DNA of 64,000 nt from Trichosphaerium sp. ATCC 40318 (taxonomy: Eukaryota; Protista; Tubulinea), in assembly GCA_038496445.1 (NCBI GenBank), contig JALMLS010000486.1, forward strand, positions 50,271 to 114,270, written 5' to 3'. Shown here one piece after another: positions 45,904 through 62,794 of the stretch. The stretch's first letter is position 1. Every line of letters starts with the position of its first letter. Under the pieces are notes generated by a model. The model was not told where the DNA came from and searched no databases. It was given only the letters and a program-made list of their open reading frames with translations. The translations under genes and the position numbers were made by a program.

Positions 45904-47980
45904 ATGGCTGAGTCTTACAGGCAAATAAACAAAAGAAGATGCCAGAAACTGTGTAGAATGCTCACTCAAGGCGAAATCACCTCGTTTGATACACGTAAAC
46001 CTAAGCCAGCGGAAATTGATTGCTTTAGCAGATCGGGCAGCTCAAAACTGCGCGAACAGTTTATCAAAGCTCTGGTAAGTTGTATTTATTGATATACAGA
46101 CGTTTTTAAAGCGCGTTAAAACAGTTTGCTTGATTTCCAGTTTTTGACAAGCTGTAACAGCTTTCTTACGCGATAACATGCGCTATCACGACCACTAGTA
46201 GTGGTTCTACACATTACAACAGAAAATTAAACCAAAACTAGGGTGAAAGCAGAGTAGACAAAGTGACAATACACGCAGCAGGATTGGGTACATACGTTGG
46301 ATGGAGTGTCAACACCATGGTATATTTTCTTGTTTTTTTTTTGATTTCCACAAATTTATTTGCGATATTGTTTTCTTCTTTGTTTCTTACTTCTGCTAGC
46401 CTTCTTTGGACCTTGTGGTTAATGCTCTACATAGCACACTCAAATCTCTATCGCTGTTTGATTTGGACAAACATTGTAATCTCAGCAAACTATTTGAAGG
46501 CACGTGCCAACTACGTTTTAGTTACTGTTTTTTTGTTCATAGCTTGTTGATGTTTTGATTCTACCCTTACAATTTATTTTCTTGCTTGCCCTTACAATCT
46601 ATTCTTAGTACTTGGAAATAGCTGCCCTCCAAATCTAAAAGATCTGCACTTCGTGGCCAAAGCACGTGATAAACCAATCATCACCAAAAACCATTTGAAA
46701 ATGTTTGCTACAGCAAAGTGTCCCAAACTCAAGCGGTTGACACTTGAAGGTGTTGAAGGAGACGGTTTCTTTCATATTGCAGAGCTTCTTGCATCTCCTG
46801 GATTCTCGAAACTTGAGACTTTATCTATTTCTCACACTGGAAGGACGTACCCTGGTGAAGTGTTTTACATTTATGACAAACCTGTCAAATCAATCATTGA
46901 GTTTGCTTCAAGTGCCTCAAATCATCCATCACTGACAAGTCTTTACCTTGAGTTCAGATTTGGAGTGGTTCTAAAGAATGAAAAAGGTAAAAATACTTTA
47001 CTTTTTGTATCCACGTGCAAAACACGTGCCATTTGGTTTTTTATCAAAACTTACTAACCGCGTTGTTTTACACAGTGATGAAAGCTTTGTCACATATTGT
47101 CCAGAATGCAGGACTCTCATTGTTTTCTCTTGAAGTCAAGACTACTCCAGTGTTATCTCAATACGCACATTTGCTTGGAAAAGGATTAGGAGAAAACACA
47201 ACAATACAGAATTACGAGGTTCTCAATGTTGCTTCAGAGTCCCTGGCCCTTGTTATAGCAAAAGCATTAAAGACGAATAATACCCTAAAGTATTTGAAAC
47301 TAAGTCACCTCATAGACGATGAAGGCACGCAAATCTTTGCATTGTTTAAAATTTCGTTTTCTTTAGATAGATTTTTTACCCTTCTCAGTGTTAATTTATT
47401 AGGATCTTATGCGCTAGCACAAGCGTTTGAAGAATCCGATACCCTCAAGAATCTAGACATTAGTAGGAACCAGTTGGCAAACAATAAAGCCTTGAAGCAA
47501 ATAAAGGATACAAATAACAGTAGAACGAAAAAAAAAACAAGATGGGGTAAAATGAAGGGCTCTCACTTGAGAAGTGCTAAAGCGAAAAAAGAGCCAGTAA
47601 GCAGTTTGTCCTTTAGCGAGTCAGCTTCTGTAGAACAAGAAGATCATGTTACCAACATTATAAAGGCTGAATGTAAAGGAACAAAAAAGGATACTGCTGA
47701 GAGCAAGAAGGTAAAAGATGAAAGCTTGAGTGCTAGTACAGTATCAAAGAAAGAAGAGAGTTATTCATCACACAACAATAGAACTAATTCAGTTGCAGAC
47801 TACGAAACTGTTTCACCTTACCTTGAAGCTAATGAACAAAGTGTGATTAGTAAGATGCAGGATAGGATAAATAACTTGGAATCACAAGTTCAATCATTGG
47901 CCAAACTAAGTATGAACCTTCAAGAACAATGCACAGAATTAAATGAGAAACTTAAAAGTTTGATGGCCGAAAGGGATTAA
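45904..47980 (+). CDS. RNI-like LRR protein with C-terminal coiled coil (copy A)
   Basis: CPKLKRLTLEG, ALKTNNTLKYLKL, DTLKNLDISRNQL. Coiled coil MQDRINNLESQVQSL. Confidence 0.75.
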
Positions 47981-48185
47981 TAAATATTAATTTAATTTTA
48001 ATATTTGCACGTGTGCTACGCTGTGTGATTTGTACAAAAATTGTTTCGTTCTCACTCGACCTGTCCTCAGTACTTTCAAGACGGTACTGGCTACTATAAC
48101 AGTCCCTGTTACGTTATCTGACATAAAAGCGCTATCAGAATCTGTAGTAGTACCTGTACAAAAACTGACTTGCAACGACCTTTGA

Positions 48186-49678: not shown

Positions 49679-51776
49679 TTATTGATCCCTTTCCGCCATT
49701 AACAACTCTACTTTTTCTTGAAGGTTCATACTTAGTTTGGCTAATGATTGAACTTGTGATTCCAAGTTATTTATCCTATCCTGCATCTTACTAATCACGC
49801 TTTGTTCATTAGCTTCAAGGTAAGGTGAAGCAGCTTCGTAGTCTGCAACTGAATTAGTTCTATTGTTGTGTGATGAATAACTCTCTTCTTTCTTTGATAA
49901 TGGACTAGCACTCAAGCTTTCATCTGATAATGGACTAGCACTCAAGCTTTCATCTTTTGCCCTCTTGCTCTCAGCAGCTTCCTTTTTGAGTGCTTCACGA
50001 AATTCTTTGGCCTTTTTTAAGGCATCAAGTTCATCCCTTCTAATTCTAGCCGCTTGTTCTTCATCCACAGATTCACTTGACGAGGTTGCGGACATGCGAA
50101 ATTTTTTTTTCGACTTTACATCACTTTTAAATTTAGGTCTAGTTTTCTTGCCCTTTAGAGCCCACGTAGTTTTTTTCTCTCGGTTATTATTTGTCACCCT
50201 GATTCGATCCAAGGCTTTATTGTTTGCCAGTTCATTCTGTGTAATATCTACATTCTTGAGGGTCTCGGATTCCTCAAATACTTTCGCTAGTGCAAAAGAA
50301 CCTAATGTTAAAAACAATAAGTCAACGTCTAACAATTTTAAACAAAGCAGAGATTTGCGTGCCTTCATCGTCTATGAGACGATTTAGTTTCAGATACCTT
50401 AGGGTATTATTCGTCTTTAATGCTTTTGCTATAACCAGAGCCAAATACTCTGAAGCAACATTGAGAACTTCGAAATTCTGTATTGTTGTGTTTTCTGCTA
50501 GAGCTTGTCCAAGCAAGTGTATATGTCGACATAATATTGGATTCATCTTGACTTCAAGAGAAAACAATGATAGCCCTGCATTCTGGACAATATGTGATAA
50601 AGCTTTCATCACTGTAAAACAACACGGTTAGCAAGTTTTGATAAAAACCCAAATGACACGTGTTTTTGCACGTGGATACAAAAAGTAAAGTATTTTTACC
50701 TTTTTCATTCTTTAGAACCACTCCAAATCTGAACTCAAGGTAAAGACTTGTCAGTGATGGATGATTTGAGGCACTTGAAGCAAACTCAATGATTGATTTG
50801 ACAGGTTTGTCATAAATGTAAAACACTTCACCAGGGTATGTCCTTCCAGTGTGAGAAATAGATAAAGTCTCAAGTTTCGAGAATCCAGGAGATGCAAGAA
50901 GCTCTGCAATATGAAAGAAACCGTCTCCTTCAACACCCTCAAGTGTCAACCGCTTGAGTTTGGGACACTTTGCTGTAGCAAACATTTTCAAATGGTTTTT
51001 GGTGATGATTGGTTTATCACGTGCTTTGGCCAAGAAGTGCAGATCTTTTAGCTTTGGAGGGAAGTTATTTCCAAGTACTAAGAATAGATTGTAAGAGTAA
51101 GCAAGTAAAATAAGCTCTGAATATTCAAAACAAAAAACAAAAACTCTTTCGAAAAAGAAACTATAACGTGCTCTAGTTAGTTGTCACGTGCCTTCAAATA
51201 GTTTGTTGAGATTACAATGTTTGTCCAATTCAATGAGTGATAGAGATTTGAGTCTGCTGTGTAGATTATTGACTAAGAGGTCCAAACAAGGCTAACAGAA
51301 GTAAGAAACAAAGAAGAAAACTCTTTTAAAACGAATTAAGAGAAAGCACAAAAACAATACCATATACGTGACATTCCATCCATACGATCGTCCTAAGCCT
51401 GATGGGTGTATTACTACATCGTCTACTCTACTTTCACCCTAGTTTTGGTTTAATTTTCTGTTGTAATGTGTAGAACCACTACTGGCGGTCGTGATAGCGC
51501 ATGTTATCGCGTAAGAAAGCTGTTACAGCTTGTCAAAAACTGGAAATCAAGCAAACTGTTTTAACGCGCTTTAAAAACGCCTGTATATCAATAAATACAA
51601 CTTACCAGAGCTTTGATAAACTGTTCGCGCTGTTTTGAGGTGCTCGTTCCAACAAAGCAACGAATTTCCTGTGGTACACCTCTCTTTGTGTTAATCGACG
51701 TGATTTCGCCTTGAGTGAGCATTCGACACAGTTTCTGGCATCTTCTTTTGTTTACTTGCTTGTATGACTCAGCCAT
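49679..51776 (-). CDS. RNI-like LRR protein with C-terminal coiled coil (copy B, inverted paralog of 45904-47980)
   Basis: Same exon structure. The central exon translation (MAKARDKP...NEKG) is identical to copy A. Confidence 0.75.
49895..49954. repeat. 30-bp perfect tandem duplication (DESLSASPLS x2) in copy B only
   Basis: TGATAATGGACTAGCACTCAAGCTTTCATC occurs twice in tandem. Confidence 0.95.
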
Positions 51777-57386: not shown

Positions 57387-58383
57387 ATGCAACAAGTACT
57401 AATCGCGCTACTACTGCTTTCATGCGCTATACTAGCTAAAAGCGAGTTTATTGAAGCGTTACCAAGGTACTTATTAAATTTAATGTCGTTGCTGACGTGT
57501 GAGACAAAGGTTAACGTGGTCAAACCACTCTGCGCTTGATCCTACAGCATGGCCATGTTCTATTGATAAAGTAGATAATATTGGAATACAGACATTCCTA
57601 ACAACCTACAAAGAAAAGTTACCAGTGATTATAACCGGCTCATCGAATAATTCGCAGTTTGTACAGTCATGTCAAAGAAATAACCTTATTGAGCGCTATG
57701 GTGACGCTACAGTAAGGCTATCAACAGCGAATAGCTATTCGTACGAAAAAAGAGACGAAAAGCTACGTACATACGTAGAAGAGATGATGTTTCCTCAAAA
57801 CGTACCAAATGAATTACAAATACGCCCTTATTAATCAAACAACGTTTAGCTGGACACTCCAGGAGATAAAACGTACTACCATTTTGGTGACAACAACCAC
57901 AAAGAGTTTGAAGACTTGTTCAATGAATACGTCCTACCCAAGTATCTTGATAAGGATAAACCATATGCTATTAGTTTCGGCTTAGCAGGAGATGGTTCTG
58001 GTGTACCTTTTCATTTTCATGGTGCAGTATGGGCCGGTAAGTCGTCATAGACATTTTTTTTCAAGTTGTTTTTTTACTTCGTTAACGGTTTCACTTTTAG
58101 AGGTAGTTCATGGATACAAGCTTTGGTTGCTTTATCCACCTTCGCCTAAACCTGTTTTTGAACCTAATGAAACAACACTCAAGTGGATACAAACACGTTA
58201 TAGGCACATGTCAGGTGCTGAAAAACCGATAGGTAGAGCTCGTAAATATTTTTAGTTCGTGTCATTCTAAACAAGATTGTAGTTTGTGTGTTGCCACCTG
58301 GAGAGTTATTGTACATACCCAATGGTTGGTATCATGCTACACTAAACATGGGAGAGTCTGTCTTCATCTCAGTATTTGTTTAA
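57387..58383 (+). CDS. JMJD8: Signal-peptide JmjC protein, JMJD8-like
   Basis: VRLSTANSYSY, YHFGDNN, SFGLAGDGSGVPFHFHG, KLWLLYPP, PNGWYHATLN. Confidence 0.8.
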
Positions 58384-58781
58384 CCTCAAGAACAGCAAAA
58401 CAAAAGAAAACAGAGTTTTCTTTACCTTGGCCACACAACACGAGTAATAGAAATTAGCATGGATTGAAACCTGTCACAAACATAGCAAGTACAGAAAGAA
58501 TCCACAAACCCGCAAAAACGAATAAATCACACCCAGCAGCTAGAAAGCGAAATAAAAAAAAAAAGACACTCAAAAAAATATCCAAAAAGTTGTTTGCACG
58601 TGATGTGCTGTATGTAGATAATGGTATTCCATTCTGTTAACTAAAACCGTAAATGAGCACATGAGTACTAAAGTGGTGACTGTAAAACTCGAGTATAAAG
58701 AGGTTTCCTTAACGATCTTCAAATTCTCGCTTAGCTGTAAATTGAGTTGCTCAACGCTCGTCGCAATGGATGGCTAAATAA

Positions 58782-60747
58782 ATGAGTAAACGAAAGACTA
58801 CAGGCACTGGTTAGTATAGCACGATTTTGTGTTTTTAACAGCAGATTAATTTTAAACAATACTCTAGGCACTGCCAGACCGCCTAAGAAGCGAAAAACGA
58901 ATGCAAAATTTGATCCAATTGTTCTGTATGATATGTTAAGCGATCGGAACGAGCAGCTCGCTCAATGGACCTCAGACGATAGTTTTCGTTTAGAATACAG
59001 CAAAAAAGGTACATTAATTAAATTATAACAACGACACGCGCTTTCCTTACGTAAATATCCTCTAAAGCTAACGTTAGTAGTTCCTGGGTCAGCTCCTCTC
59101 TCACAATTGATTGGTGGTGCTAAAAATCTTTCGTACTACGGATTCAGTAAGATAGAAGGACGAGACGACTGGTAACGCCTTTATTTGCTTTACAGAGTCT
59201 TTTTTTTAACAATTGTAACATAAATTATTTCTAAGTTTGTTAAAAGGTTTCATCTGCTCGTAGAGAAGGACACAGGAAAGCGTGTATTCCGTCAGCATAA
59301 CAGAGATGATATAGGTGCAAAGGTAAACGACATTTTGGAGTTTTCTTTGAAATTTAAAAAATTTTACGCCTAACACTTTTTAAACAAGATACAACGTGCA
59401 GCTATGAAACACTATGAACCTGCTGGGTACGTTTACAATAAATACATTAAGATAAAATGCAATGACTTGTCAAATTACAAAAGTCTTCTAATTTTTTTTT
59501 TTTTGATGATGTTCACGTTTGTTACAATGTATTATTTCTTACTCGATTTTTAGCACTATAATTGAAAAAAATATAGCGCTTATGATCCGTTACAGTATTT
59601 ATCTATTACACATTCAAGTAATCTTGTCGCTGGGATGCATGTTAACGCAAACGATGGCGATGTTTTAACGCTTCGGATGAAAATAAATAACCTTGAAGGA
59701 GAACTTAATACAGTAAAGGCTAAGCTTGCCAAGAAGGAGAGTGAGGTTGATATTTGGAAAGATCAGTGTTATGCGCTACTTCGCAAAAATAATGACACAA
59801 ACGGCACACAACAAGTGAGTATACAATCATGATTTGTTTCACAAAAAAAATTTTGTAATTTTTTTTTTTAGAACGGACTTGCAAATACTGGTGAGTCAAT
59901 TGCATTACCTGACGCGAAAGTATCCCTAGCCCCTGAAGATAATATATATGAATGCCCTATTTGTTGTGACATGACACATCTTAACGAACTTCGCGGATTT
60001 GGTTGTGGTCATCACTGTACGTTTAAGAAAAATCAAAAAAAAATTTGAAAACCCTCTCCACGTTTCGAAGAAAAGTAAGGCTCGCTGTTCAGGGCCTGGA
60101 GTCTTTTTGAATTTTTTTAAATTATGCTTACACGTGCTTTTTAATAAATAGGTTGCCGATCGTGCTTGAAGACTTACATTTCAAAACAAATCGCAAATCG
60201 AGCTATTCCTATTAGATGCCCTTTCCCTTGTGACCACGAAATTCAACAAGGTGAAATCACATGCCATATTGATCCACAACAATATAAACAATATATGGCC
60301 GCTGTACACGACTCATTGGTTATGCGTAGCGATGACCTAGTGTACGTACAAACAAATCAAAAATTATTACCAAAGTTAGCTTACCATTTTACTAAACAGG
60401 TACTGTCCTACTCCTGATTGCGACCAAGTTGTTCAATGGGATAAAGATCGCAACCCACGACTTCAATGCCAAAAATGTTGCAACACATGGTGCCTCCTAT
60501 GCAAAGTACCTTGGCATGATGGTCTCACATGTCAAGAGTATCAAGCTTCTCGTTTCCTCCACCATTAGATCCAGAACCACTTGATCTTAATATCGGTGAT
60601 GGTGGGTTTGTTACTTGTGCTTGTGGTACTTGGTTGGAGTATACATCTGGCTGTTATGTTGTCACTTGTATTTGTGGTAGAAGAGTTTGTGGCAAGTGTG
60701 GTAAGGTTGTCGAGCCTGGAAACACTTGCTCTCACACCACGTGGTGA
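58782..60747 (+). CDS. HSF-type DNA-binding-like domain + coiled coil + RBR (RING1-IBR-RING2) E3 ubiquitin ligase
   Basis: All splice phases join in frame. LYDMLSD..QLAQWTSDDSF...NLSYYGFSKI..W. CPICC..CGHHCCRSC..CPFPC, YCPTPDC..CQKC..CLLCKVPWHDGLTC, CAC..SGCYVVTCICGRRVCGKC. Confidence 0.8.
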
Positions 60748-60953
60748 TTTTCTCGAAAAAAACGGGAATGGATGATGTAAGAGTAATATTCGGATATTTG
60801 TAAATTTTTTTTAAAATAACTTGTAAAAAGAGAAATAGAAACCAATTGGTTTAAAATTATGACGTGTTTCTGTAAATGCGAAAAAATAGAAAAGTGCGCT
60901 TAATGAATTTTTTGGTTAAGTTGTTTGAAGTTTTTTTGTTTTATTTGTGTACT

Positions 60954-62794
60954 ATGTCTGTGGAAGTGCAGCATAAGATAGTAGTTATTGGAGCAGGTGT
61001 AGTAGGTCTTTCGACAGCAGTTGTTTTGTCGGAATGTTCAAAACTCGACAACAGCACAATACAGATTATTGATAAGGTATTACCACCAGGAAACCAAGCT
61101 TCTGCTTTATCTTCAGGATTGGTAAGCTAATTGTTTATTTAAACACGCATTCCAACCATATACAGGTATACTACCCAGCGCTATTGAGCGAAAAACACGG
61201 GCGAAGCACAATTGAACGGTTTAAGCAATTATCCACCAACAGCGAAGAAACAGGTACAAGCACATTAAACTAACGGCATTATGTGTTCGAATGGTAACCA
61301 TTTTTAGGCGTTGTAATTACACCATCCGTCATTTTGCGCCGAACAGACGAAGGAGGCGTTATAACAAAGCCAGCTGACTTTACTGCTGAAACATTAACCA
61401 AACTCCAAGAACTCGATCCAAGCTTTCGAAAAGCAACTACAGAGGAGCTCAAAGGTGCGTCACATCAAGGTAAACATTCTAAGGGCATAACAAGTTCCAT
61501 AGGAGCACCTAATGGCATGTTTGGACCTCAGCCCGTAATTGCAATGCCAACGTACTTGCAGTATTTAAAAAACAAATTGGATAGTCACAAACGCGTCAGC
61601 TTTGAGCAAGCCAACATATCAAGCCTACGAGAAGTGTTTCAAAAAACAAATGCGTCAGTTATTATAAATGCTGCTGGAATTGGTGCTGGAACACTTACAG
61701 GAGAATCTGTAACTTCATTAAGTACGTTTGAAGCAAAAAGGGATGATTTTCGGATGTTAATCCCTTTTAATGATTTTCGGGGTTTTGTTCTTTAGCGATG
61801 ACGTGTAGTTATACTGGCGAACCGTAAAGCGGTTTTTTGACAAAAACGGCATTAATTTCCCACAATTGATTTCGCTGATTTACCTCTATTCGCGTTTAAC
61901 TATTCGCTTAGGTAGCCATATGATGCTTTTAAAGCATACTGGTAAAACACTCGCACGAGATAATTATGTATCGTACTACGACGAAACTAACCCTCTGGTA
62001 ACACCTACTACTTTCCACGTCAAGATGGGTGCATTTTAGGCAAGTTATACTAAATTTATTGAAATCGTGATTTATACTGTCGATTCCGAAGGAATAGTCC
62101 AATACACAATTTTATAACGTATTTACGGAGCTTTTTTTCTGTTTTGTTCCAAAAAAAACCGATCGGTTGAAAAGTTTTTTTGCGATGTGCCTTTGTTTAA
62201 CGTCTTTTAAATAGGCGGTACAGACACTACAGCTATTGGTAATAATGTTGATGATACAGTTATAACTAATATACTCGCTCGTGTTGATTTAATGTTACCA
62301 GAGTTGAGCTTAAAAGACGCACAGATAGAACGTACTTGGGTACACATTCGATACTTTTCATCAACTTCTAACTTTTTTTTTTTCCTTTCTTATTTTCTTG
62401 TAATTAATCTGTTTAAAGGTTGGTTCACGCCCTATACGTGCTAGTGGTGTTAGATTAGAAGTAGAAGAAACAAATGAAGGACCTGTAGTACACAACTATG
62501 GCCACGGTACTGATATTTTTCTAAAATACAAAAACCTGTTTTTTTGGGTTTTTTTTTTACAAACAAAAAATTATCATCCCTCAATAAAGTAAACTAGCAG
62601 GCTTGGGCATAACAACATCTTGGACGTCTGCAGAAACAGCTGTAGAGCTTGTTATAAAACGATTGAACTATTTTTCTTCCTTGGAGGATTCAAGCTTAAA
62701 GAGGCCGTTCGAGGGTGCTGGTGATGGTGAAGATGATCAATCACCTAAAAAAAGACGTCGTATACAAAGTACAGACAAGAATGTTGAAGAATGA
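60954..62794 (+). CDS. DAO: D-amino-acid oxidase family flavoprotein
   Basis: IVVIGAGVVGLSTA, MPTYLQYL, IINAAGIGA, ILGGT, VGSRPIR..VRLE, VVHNYGHGGLGITTSW. Confidence 0.9.

Follow-up and report, generated by a model that had tools for sequence, protein, structure and literature searches.

The interval from 58782 to 60747 of the 64-kb window (the whole stretch of DNA that was analysed, positions 1-64000) is occupied by a single expressed gene of a marine microbial eukaryote, in which an N-terminal head weakly resembling the DNA-binding domain of heat-shock factors (HSFs) and a C-terminal RING1-IBR-RING2 (RBR) module are fused in one open reading frame. We read its 439-residue product, with a probability of about 0.5, as a nuclear RBR-type ubiquitin ligase that carries a strongly diverged HSF-type winged-helix head as its targeting part. 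The structure of the gene and the nature of its C-terminal half were observed directly, and the ancestry of the head and the activity of the protein are argued below with the strength that profile scores, motif comparisons and published work on related enzymes allow.

The transcript data were Logan contigs from four public runs, carrying three coded organism labels, that were aligned to 58600-60900; L001 (1465 nt) and L002 (1460 nt) are JGI transcript contigs that encode the product (P0001), with the open reading frame at 31-1350. Together with the genomic sequence, the contigs define one nine-exon gene on the + strand, running from ATG 58782 to TGA 60745-60747 (Table 1). Its eight introns, all GT..AG, are absent from the transcript contigs, which describe a single spliced and polyadenylated mRNA of 1392-1465 nt spanning 58752 to about 60856. 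One contig, X1 (1392 nt), is unbroken across 58752 to 60789. L001 and L002 match the exons of the window at 100% apart from two one-base gaps, and have a poly(A) run after about 60856; their 5′ ends, like that of X1, lie at 58752. The encoded protein is identical to the transcript-based gene model, and exon 8 by itself is a 100% match to P0001 residues 262-323. An initial sequence-only reading of this DNA had proposed that the two halves belong to one gene, and a cDNA test for two separate genes bore this out, giving one mRNA with one open reading frame. Two splice sites of that reading had to be moved, however. The acceptor of exon 3 is placed by the transcripts at 59081, giving KKVPGS, and the intron drawn at 59427-59576 needs another 3′ end, since the transcripts give 59427-59553. 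The acceptor at 59576 is thus ruled out, and starting exon 6 at 59554 adds eight codons (TIIEEKYS).

Table 1. Coordinates of the RBR gene, its exons and introns, and the genes on either side, as positions of the window
Feature	Position	Strand	Basis
Upstream neighbour, JmjC/cupin-type protein, last exon	58288-58383	+	
5′ UTR, 30 nt	58752-58781	+	5′ ends of L001, L002 and X1
Exon 1, start codon and KRK (residues 3-5)	58782-58809	+	Joint 58809 to 58868, GT..AG, in X1 and X6
Exon 2, PPKKRK (58879-58896), then start of HSF-like domain (F24 at 58909)	58868-59008	+	
Exon 3, PLSQLIGGAKNLSYYGFSKIEGRDDW, putative helix 2, shortened helix 3 and strand 3	59081-59171	+	Joint 59008 to 59081 (72-nt intron) in X1 and X2
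Exon 4, FHLLVEKDTGKRVFRQHNRDDIGAK	59247-59322	+	Joints in X1 and X2
Exon 5, IQRAAMKHYEPAG, end of HSF-like domain (about R115, 59395-59397)	59389-59426	+	Joints in X1, X2 and X6
Exon 6, linker and six-heptad coiled coil (residues 162-203, 59662-59787)	59554-59814	+	Transcript joints
Exon 7, linker and first half of RING1 (C240 at 59953; CPICC...GCGHHC)	59872-60016	+	Transcripts, profile and PDB matches
Exon 8, second half of RING1 (to C287, 60229-60231), RING1-IBR linker, start of IBR (residue 307 at 60289)	60152-60341	+	
Exon 9, coding part: IBR core (to C368, 60530-60532), RING2/Rcat (60616-60735), Cys409 (60652-60654), TGA (60745-60747)	60400-60747	+	
3′ UTR to poly(A) site	60748-60856	+	Poly(A) run of L001 after about 60856
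Introns	58810-58867, 59009-59080, 59172-59246, 59323-59388, 59427-59553, 59815-59871, 60017-60151, 60342-60399	+	Transcript contigs
Downstream neighbour, DAO-type FAD oxidoreductase, first exon	60957-61124	+	

Both flanking genes are unrelated to the RBR gene. Read from the sequence, the 5′ UTR contains two overlapping three-codon uORFs, 58766-58777 (MDG-stop) and 58770-58781 (MAK-stop), the second of which directly adjoins the main ATG; the pair may represent a form of translational control.

The two gaps each remove one base from the window. In all transcripts, 59566 is followed by a G (...TTGAAGAAAAATATAG) that is missing from the window, as is apparent from the 14 letters that they have between the sides of the joint and from one gap in the L001/L002 alignment. 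All transcripts also contain an extra base after 60545/60546; X1, X2, L001 and L002 have a T there and X4 has a C, and Ala373-Phe374 is encoded in either case. With the true splice site, the window as assembled reaches a stop soon after the start of exon 6 and the TIIEEKYS stretch is out of frame; with the acceptor at 59576 it reads ...CQEYQASRFLHH, and the IBR frame meets a stop (TAG) at 60566-60568. RING2 lies in another frame than the IBR in the window as assembled, whereas a single frame covers both in all transcripts. Thus, the earlier claim that nine exons splice in frame through RING1-IBR-RING2 is true of the mRNA and untrue of the window sequence as assembled. A 47-nt intron at 60522-60568, which would join the IBR to RING2, was rejected; it would delete the last IBR Cys and is used by no transcript.

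Because L001 shows no other difference from the window over about 1.46 kb and the two gaps, which are one-base deletions, fall within short A or T runs, we read the gaps as assembly errors, and we conclude that they are most likely assembly indels and not the mark of a null allele. If the window copy were instead a genuine null allele, or if it were a duplicate undergoing decay in a polyploid genome, with the intact transcripts coming from another allele, then two independent frame breaks within one gene would be expected more readily; but such a copy should hardly show zero substitutions relative to L001 over that length, UTRs included, and one-base gaps in short homopolymer contexts are typical of long-read assembly error, so that we consider a non-functional copy very improbable. 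An exact look-up of two other long ORFs of the window, used to gauge the assembly indel rate, found neither on record. The pair of gaps suggests that residual indel errors persist within coding exons of this assembly and, therefore, apparent frameshifts elsewhere in the genome should not be taken for pseudogenes without transcript support.

In the transcript frame, the C-terminal half of the protein is an RBR module, as the sequence-only reading had recognized. The Pfam IBR family (PF01485) scored 53-57 bits in two stretches against a cut-off of 24.3 (residues 307-368), and the piece 60401-60565 alone gave a Pfam IBR match at 2.2e-10. The piece containing RING2 (60529-60744) alone matched the same family at 6.5e-5 (23.4 bits, cut-off 24.3). 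In a PDB sequence search, RING1-IBR matched HOIL-1/RBCK1 (7yui_B) at 9.3e-10 and ARIH2 at 2e-3; RING2 alone against PDB sequences returned noise, with zero real matches. Pfam RING models gave weak matches to RING1 (E=0.007-0.03), in which the C3HC4 ligands are C240, C243, C257, H259, C262, C265, C283 and C287. The zinc ligands of RING2 also follow in canonical order (C397-x-C399-x9-C409-x4-C414-x-C416-x4-C421-x2-C424). Like HOIL-1/RBCK1 and ARIH2, its nearest RBRs by sequence, the protein therefore combines, in canonical order, a C3HC4 RING1 containing CPIC, an IBR, and a RING2 that carries a Cys at the catalytic position, although it is about 30% identical to any known RBR, and this over RING1-IBR alone. 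Unlike known RBRs, it has no UBL, NZF, Ariadne or RWD accessory domain, and its head consists of an orphan HSF-like domain and a coiled coil.

RING2 departs from the HOIL-1/ARIH2 type around the catalytic position. Cys409 is kept in SGCYVVTC and the usual His is missing, as had been noted earlier from the sequence; the stretch reads C409-Y-V411, with Val in the place of the triad His (+2), and no Glu or Gln occurs at the usual distance. In addition, the first zinc pair of RING2 is CxC, not CxxC, and LEYTSGC stands where RBRs have IEK..GC. A Cys-His-Glu/Gln triad is found in parkin, HHARI and HOIP, and mutation of a triad residue inactivates these enzymes in vitro (PMC3940038). One explanation for the altered RING2 is that the module is catalytically impaired, acting as a pseudo-ligase or scaffold that may bind E2 or ubiquitin without being able to discharge ubiquitin. 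The loss of the triad residues and the CxC pair would fit this explanation, but it is hard to reconcile with the conservation of Cys409 and of all zinc ligands, with changes at RING2 codons 390 and 436 that are synonymous, and with RNF216, which is active without the His (PMC7458406), and we consider it improbable. Because the triad is not universal, as the activity of RNF216 without the His illustrates (PMC7458406), RBR ligase activity of the protein is plausible. The likeness to RNF216/TRIAD3, itself an RBR without the active-site His and an active ligase, is limited to this feature; the domains of that protein (SIMs, CUE and MIU) are unlike those found here, and zero sequence match between the two was found.

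The part of the protein preceding RING1 contains a nuclear signal and a coiled coil, both of which had been reported from the sequence and both of which are present in the spliced product. PPKKRK (residues 14-19), to which the KRK at residues 3-5 can now be added, forms a classical, SV40-like nuclear signal. Residues 162-203 comprise six heptads in which 10 of the 12 a/d positions are strongly hydrophobic, a coil that is much shorter than the HR-A/B of HSFs.

A more difficult question is whether the head is derived from an HSF. When the head was compared with 24,736 Pfam families, HSF_DNA-bind (PF00447) was the sole family to match residues 24-118. The score was below threshold (E=0.06-0.07; 14.1-14.3 bits, cut-off 22), but the match was co-linear (residues 29-93 with profile positions 5-70) and repeated in three tight slices; it disappeared in longer slices, and single head exons, which are too short as pieces, gave zero Pfam matches. 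The HSF-like motifs listed in the sequence-only reading are all present in the spliced product, with LYDMLSD and AQWTSDDSFRL encoded by exon 2. Compared by eye with the family motif as we know it, LYDMLSD, W-TSDD-SF, NLSYYGFSKI, DDW-F, F-RQ and IQR occur in what we take to be the HSF order. The GGAKNLS that precedes YYGFSKI presumably takes the place of the recognition helix SFVRQLN, as the earlier reading had it and as our own alignment by eye indicates, with the DNA-contacting Arg replaced by Lys. By the same comparison, the turn between helix 2 and helix 3 would be about five residues shorter than in HSFs.

Other methods returned no HSF. The best matches of the head among PDB sequences were lipases at E of about 0.5, which is noise, and the best match in ESM Atlas language-model features scored 0.79 (<0.8) with neighbours that are not HSFs. 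AlphaFold2 run without an alignment gave a pLDDT of 35 for the full-length protein and 42.6 for residues 18-128, and these models are too poor to bear on the fold. Foldseek searches with them gave zero matches at E≤0.001, and the best Z in VIA searches was 4.6; HSF was absent among the matches, and we regard this result as noise. Thus, of the claim that the N-terminal domain is of HSF type, what stands is that HSF_DNA-bind is its sole Pfam match; the match is sub-threshold and is joined by none from PDB sequences or language-model features.

It is possible that the head is unrelated to HSFs and resembles them by chance, in which case the protein would be a nuclear RBR ligase particular to its lineage, with an orphan head that binds to a protein substrate and not to DNA. 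A Pfam match of only E=0.06 that falls under the cut-off, the lack of any support from PDB sequences, ESM Atlas or fold searches, the missing DNA-reading motif and the zero head relatives from word-index searches are all consistent with this possibility. However, chance would have to account for a single scoring family among 24,736, for a match that runs co-linear over 65 residues, for more HSF-like motifs (DDW.F, F.RQ, I.R) beyond the aligned part and for a coiled coil that comes next, as in HSFs. On balance, we lean slightly toward the view that the head descends from an HSF-type winged helix, and consider the unrelated head the less probable of the two, though a real contender.

Relatives of the protein were sought at several levels. 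Word-index searches with the head, among proteins of 241-768 aa and of 75-240 aa, returned P0001 itself only. A word-index search with the whole protein yielded P0004 alone, a generic RBR that is 31% identical over RING1-IBR and lacks the HSF-like part, and an exhaustive HMMER search with exon 8 as the query returned P0001 and two spurious weak matches only. A scan of metagenome contigs gave a single weak IBR locus (L003). In the searches as run, no orthologues were found that show a conserved domain combination, and literature searches found no HSF-RBR fusion. The earlier statement that no such fusion has been described therefore still stands, the architecture having been found in neither the literature nor the databases, which for the head itself means by word index only. 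Among the runs, seven of seven substitutions are synonymous, as is the T/C variant at the gap site (all eight). Because all differences between strains or runs are synonymous, the part from the coil to RING2 appears to be under purifying selection. We conclude that this expressed, lineage-restricted gene encodes an RBR ligase that combines a nuclear signal and a coiled coil with an orphan head, HSF-like at most, and we infer its function.

If the head is indeed an HSF-type winged helix, the N-terminal domain, about 95 residues long, would be a strongly diverged member, with a shortened recognition helix and the Arg to Lys replacement, and it would serve to target the protein by binding to DNA or chromatin or to a partner related to HSFs. 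The sequence-only reading had offered two roles, a chromatin-targeted E3 or an HSF mimic that would ubiquitinate HSF, both of which are hypothetical. The coiled coil would make dimers or trimers, RING1 would recruit a charged E2, ubiquitin would pass to Cys409 as a thioester, and the Cys409-bound ubiquitin would then be transferred to proteins held near the head. A more specific form of this mechanism, in which a functional HSF-derived DNA-binding or HSF-docking head places an oligomeric RBR ligase on promoter elements or HSF trimers and leads to ubiquitination of chromatin-bound factors, seems unlikely. A search for HSEs near the gene found none.

The accessory domains known from RBR ligases include ubiquitin-like, zinc-finger, RWD, helicase and Ariadne domains; we came across no description of an RBR whose head is a winged-helix DNA-binding domain, whether of HSF type or another. 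If the proposed mechanism is true, one polypeptide would directly link sequence-specific DNA recognition of the heat-shock type to thioester-type ubiquitin ligation, which is undescribed for any RBR. A head that binds DNA or HSF would make the protein a compact natural E3 that reads a promoter element directly, and would give a way into the question of how degradation ends stress transcription. Should the head prove to be no more than an orphan domain, the gene would simply add to the lineage-specific RBRs.

What we take to be the HSF family motifs, L[YW]xM[LV]SD, W..(D/G).SF, L.xYGFxK[IV] and (D)W.F, are shared by the protein, as are the heptads that follow and a nuclear signal. Unlike HSFs, the protein scores below the family cut-off and has no activation domain, the RBR module being in its place. 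Skn7-type proteins of fungi join an HSF-type DNA-binding domain and coiled coil to a response-regulator receiver, and the DNA-binding domain of Skn7 is a clear member of HSF_DNA-bind. The protein described here presumably follows the same logic, an HSF-type head and coil fused to an effector. It differs from Skn7 in having an RBR ligase as its effector and a head that is no more than HSF-like.

Elsewhere in the window, a search of all 64 kb (1-64000) with Rfam gave zero families at the gathering score. A large inverted duplication is formed by 46180-47998 and 49712-51500, with arms of at least 1.8 kb that are 77-98% identical and inner ends that lie about 1.8 kb apart. Each arm contains a long ORF (47015-47980 on the + strand and 49679-50368 on the - strand) and a perfect three-unit HSE-like sequence, TTCTTGAAGGTTC.
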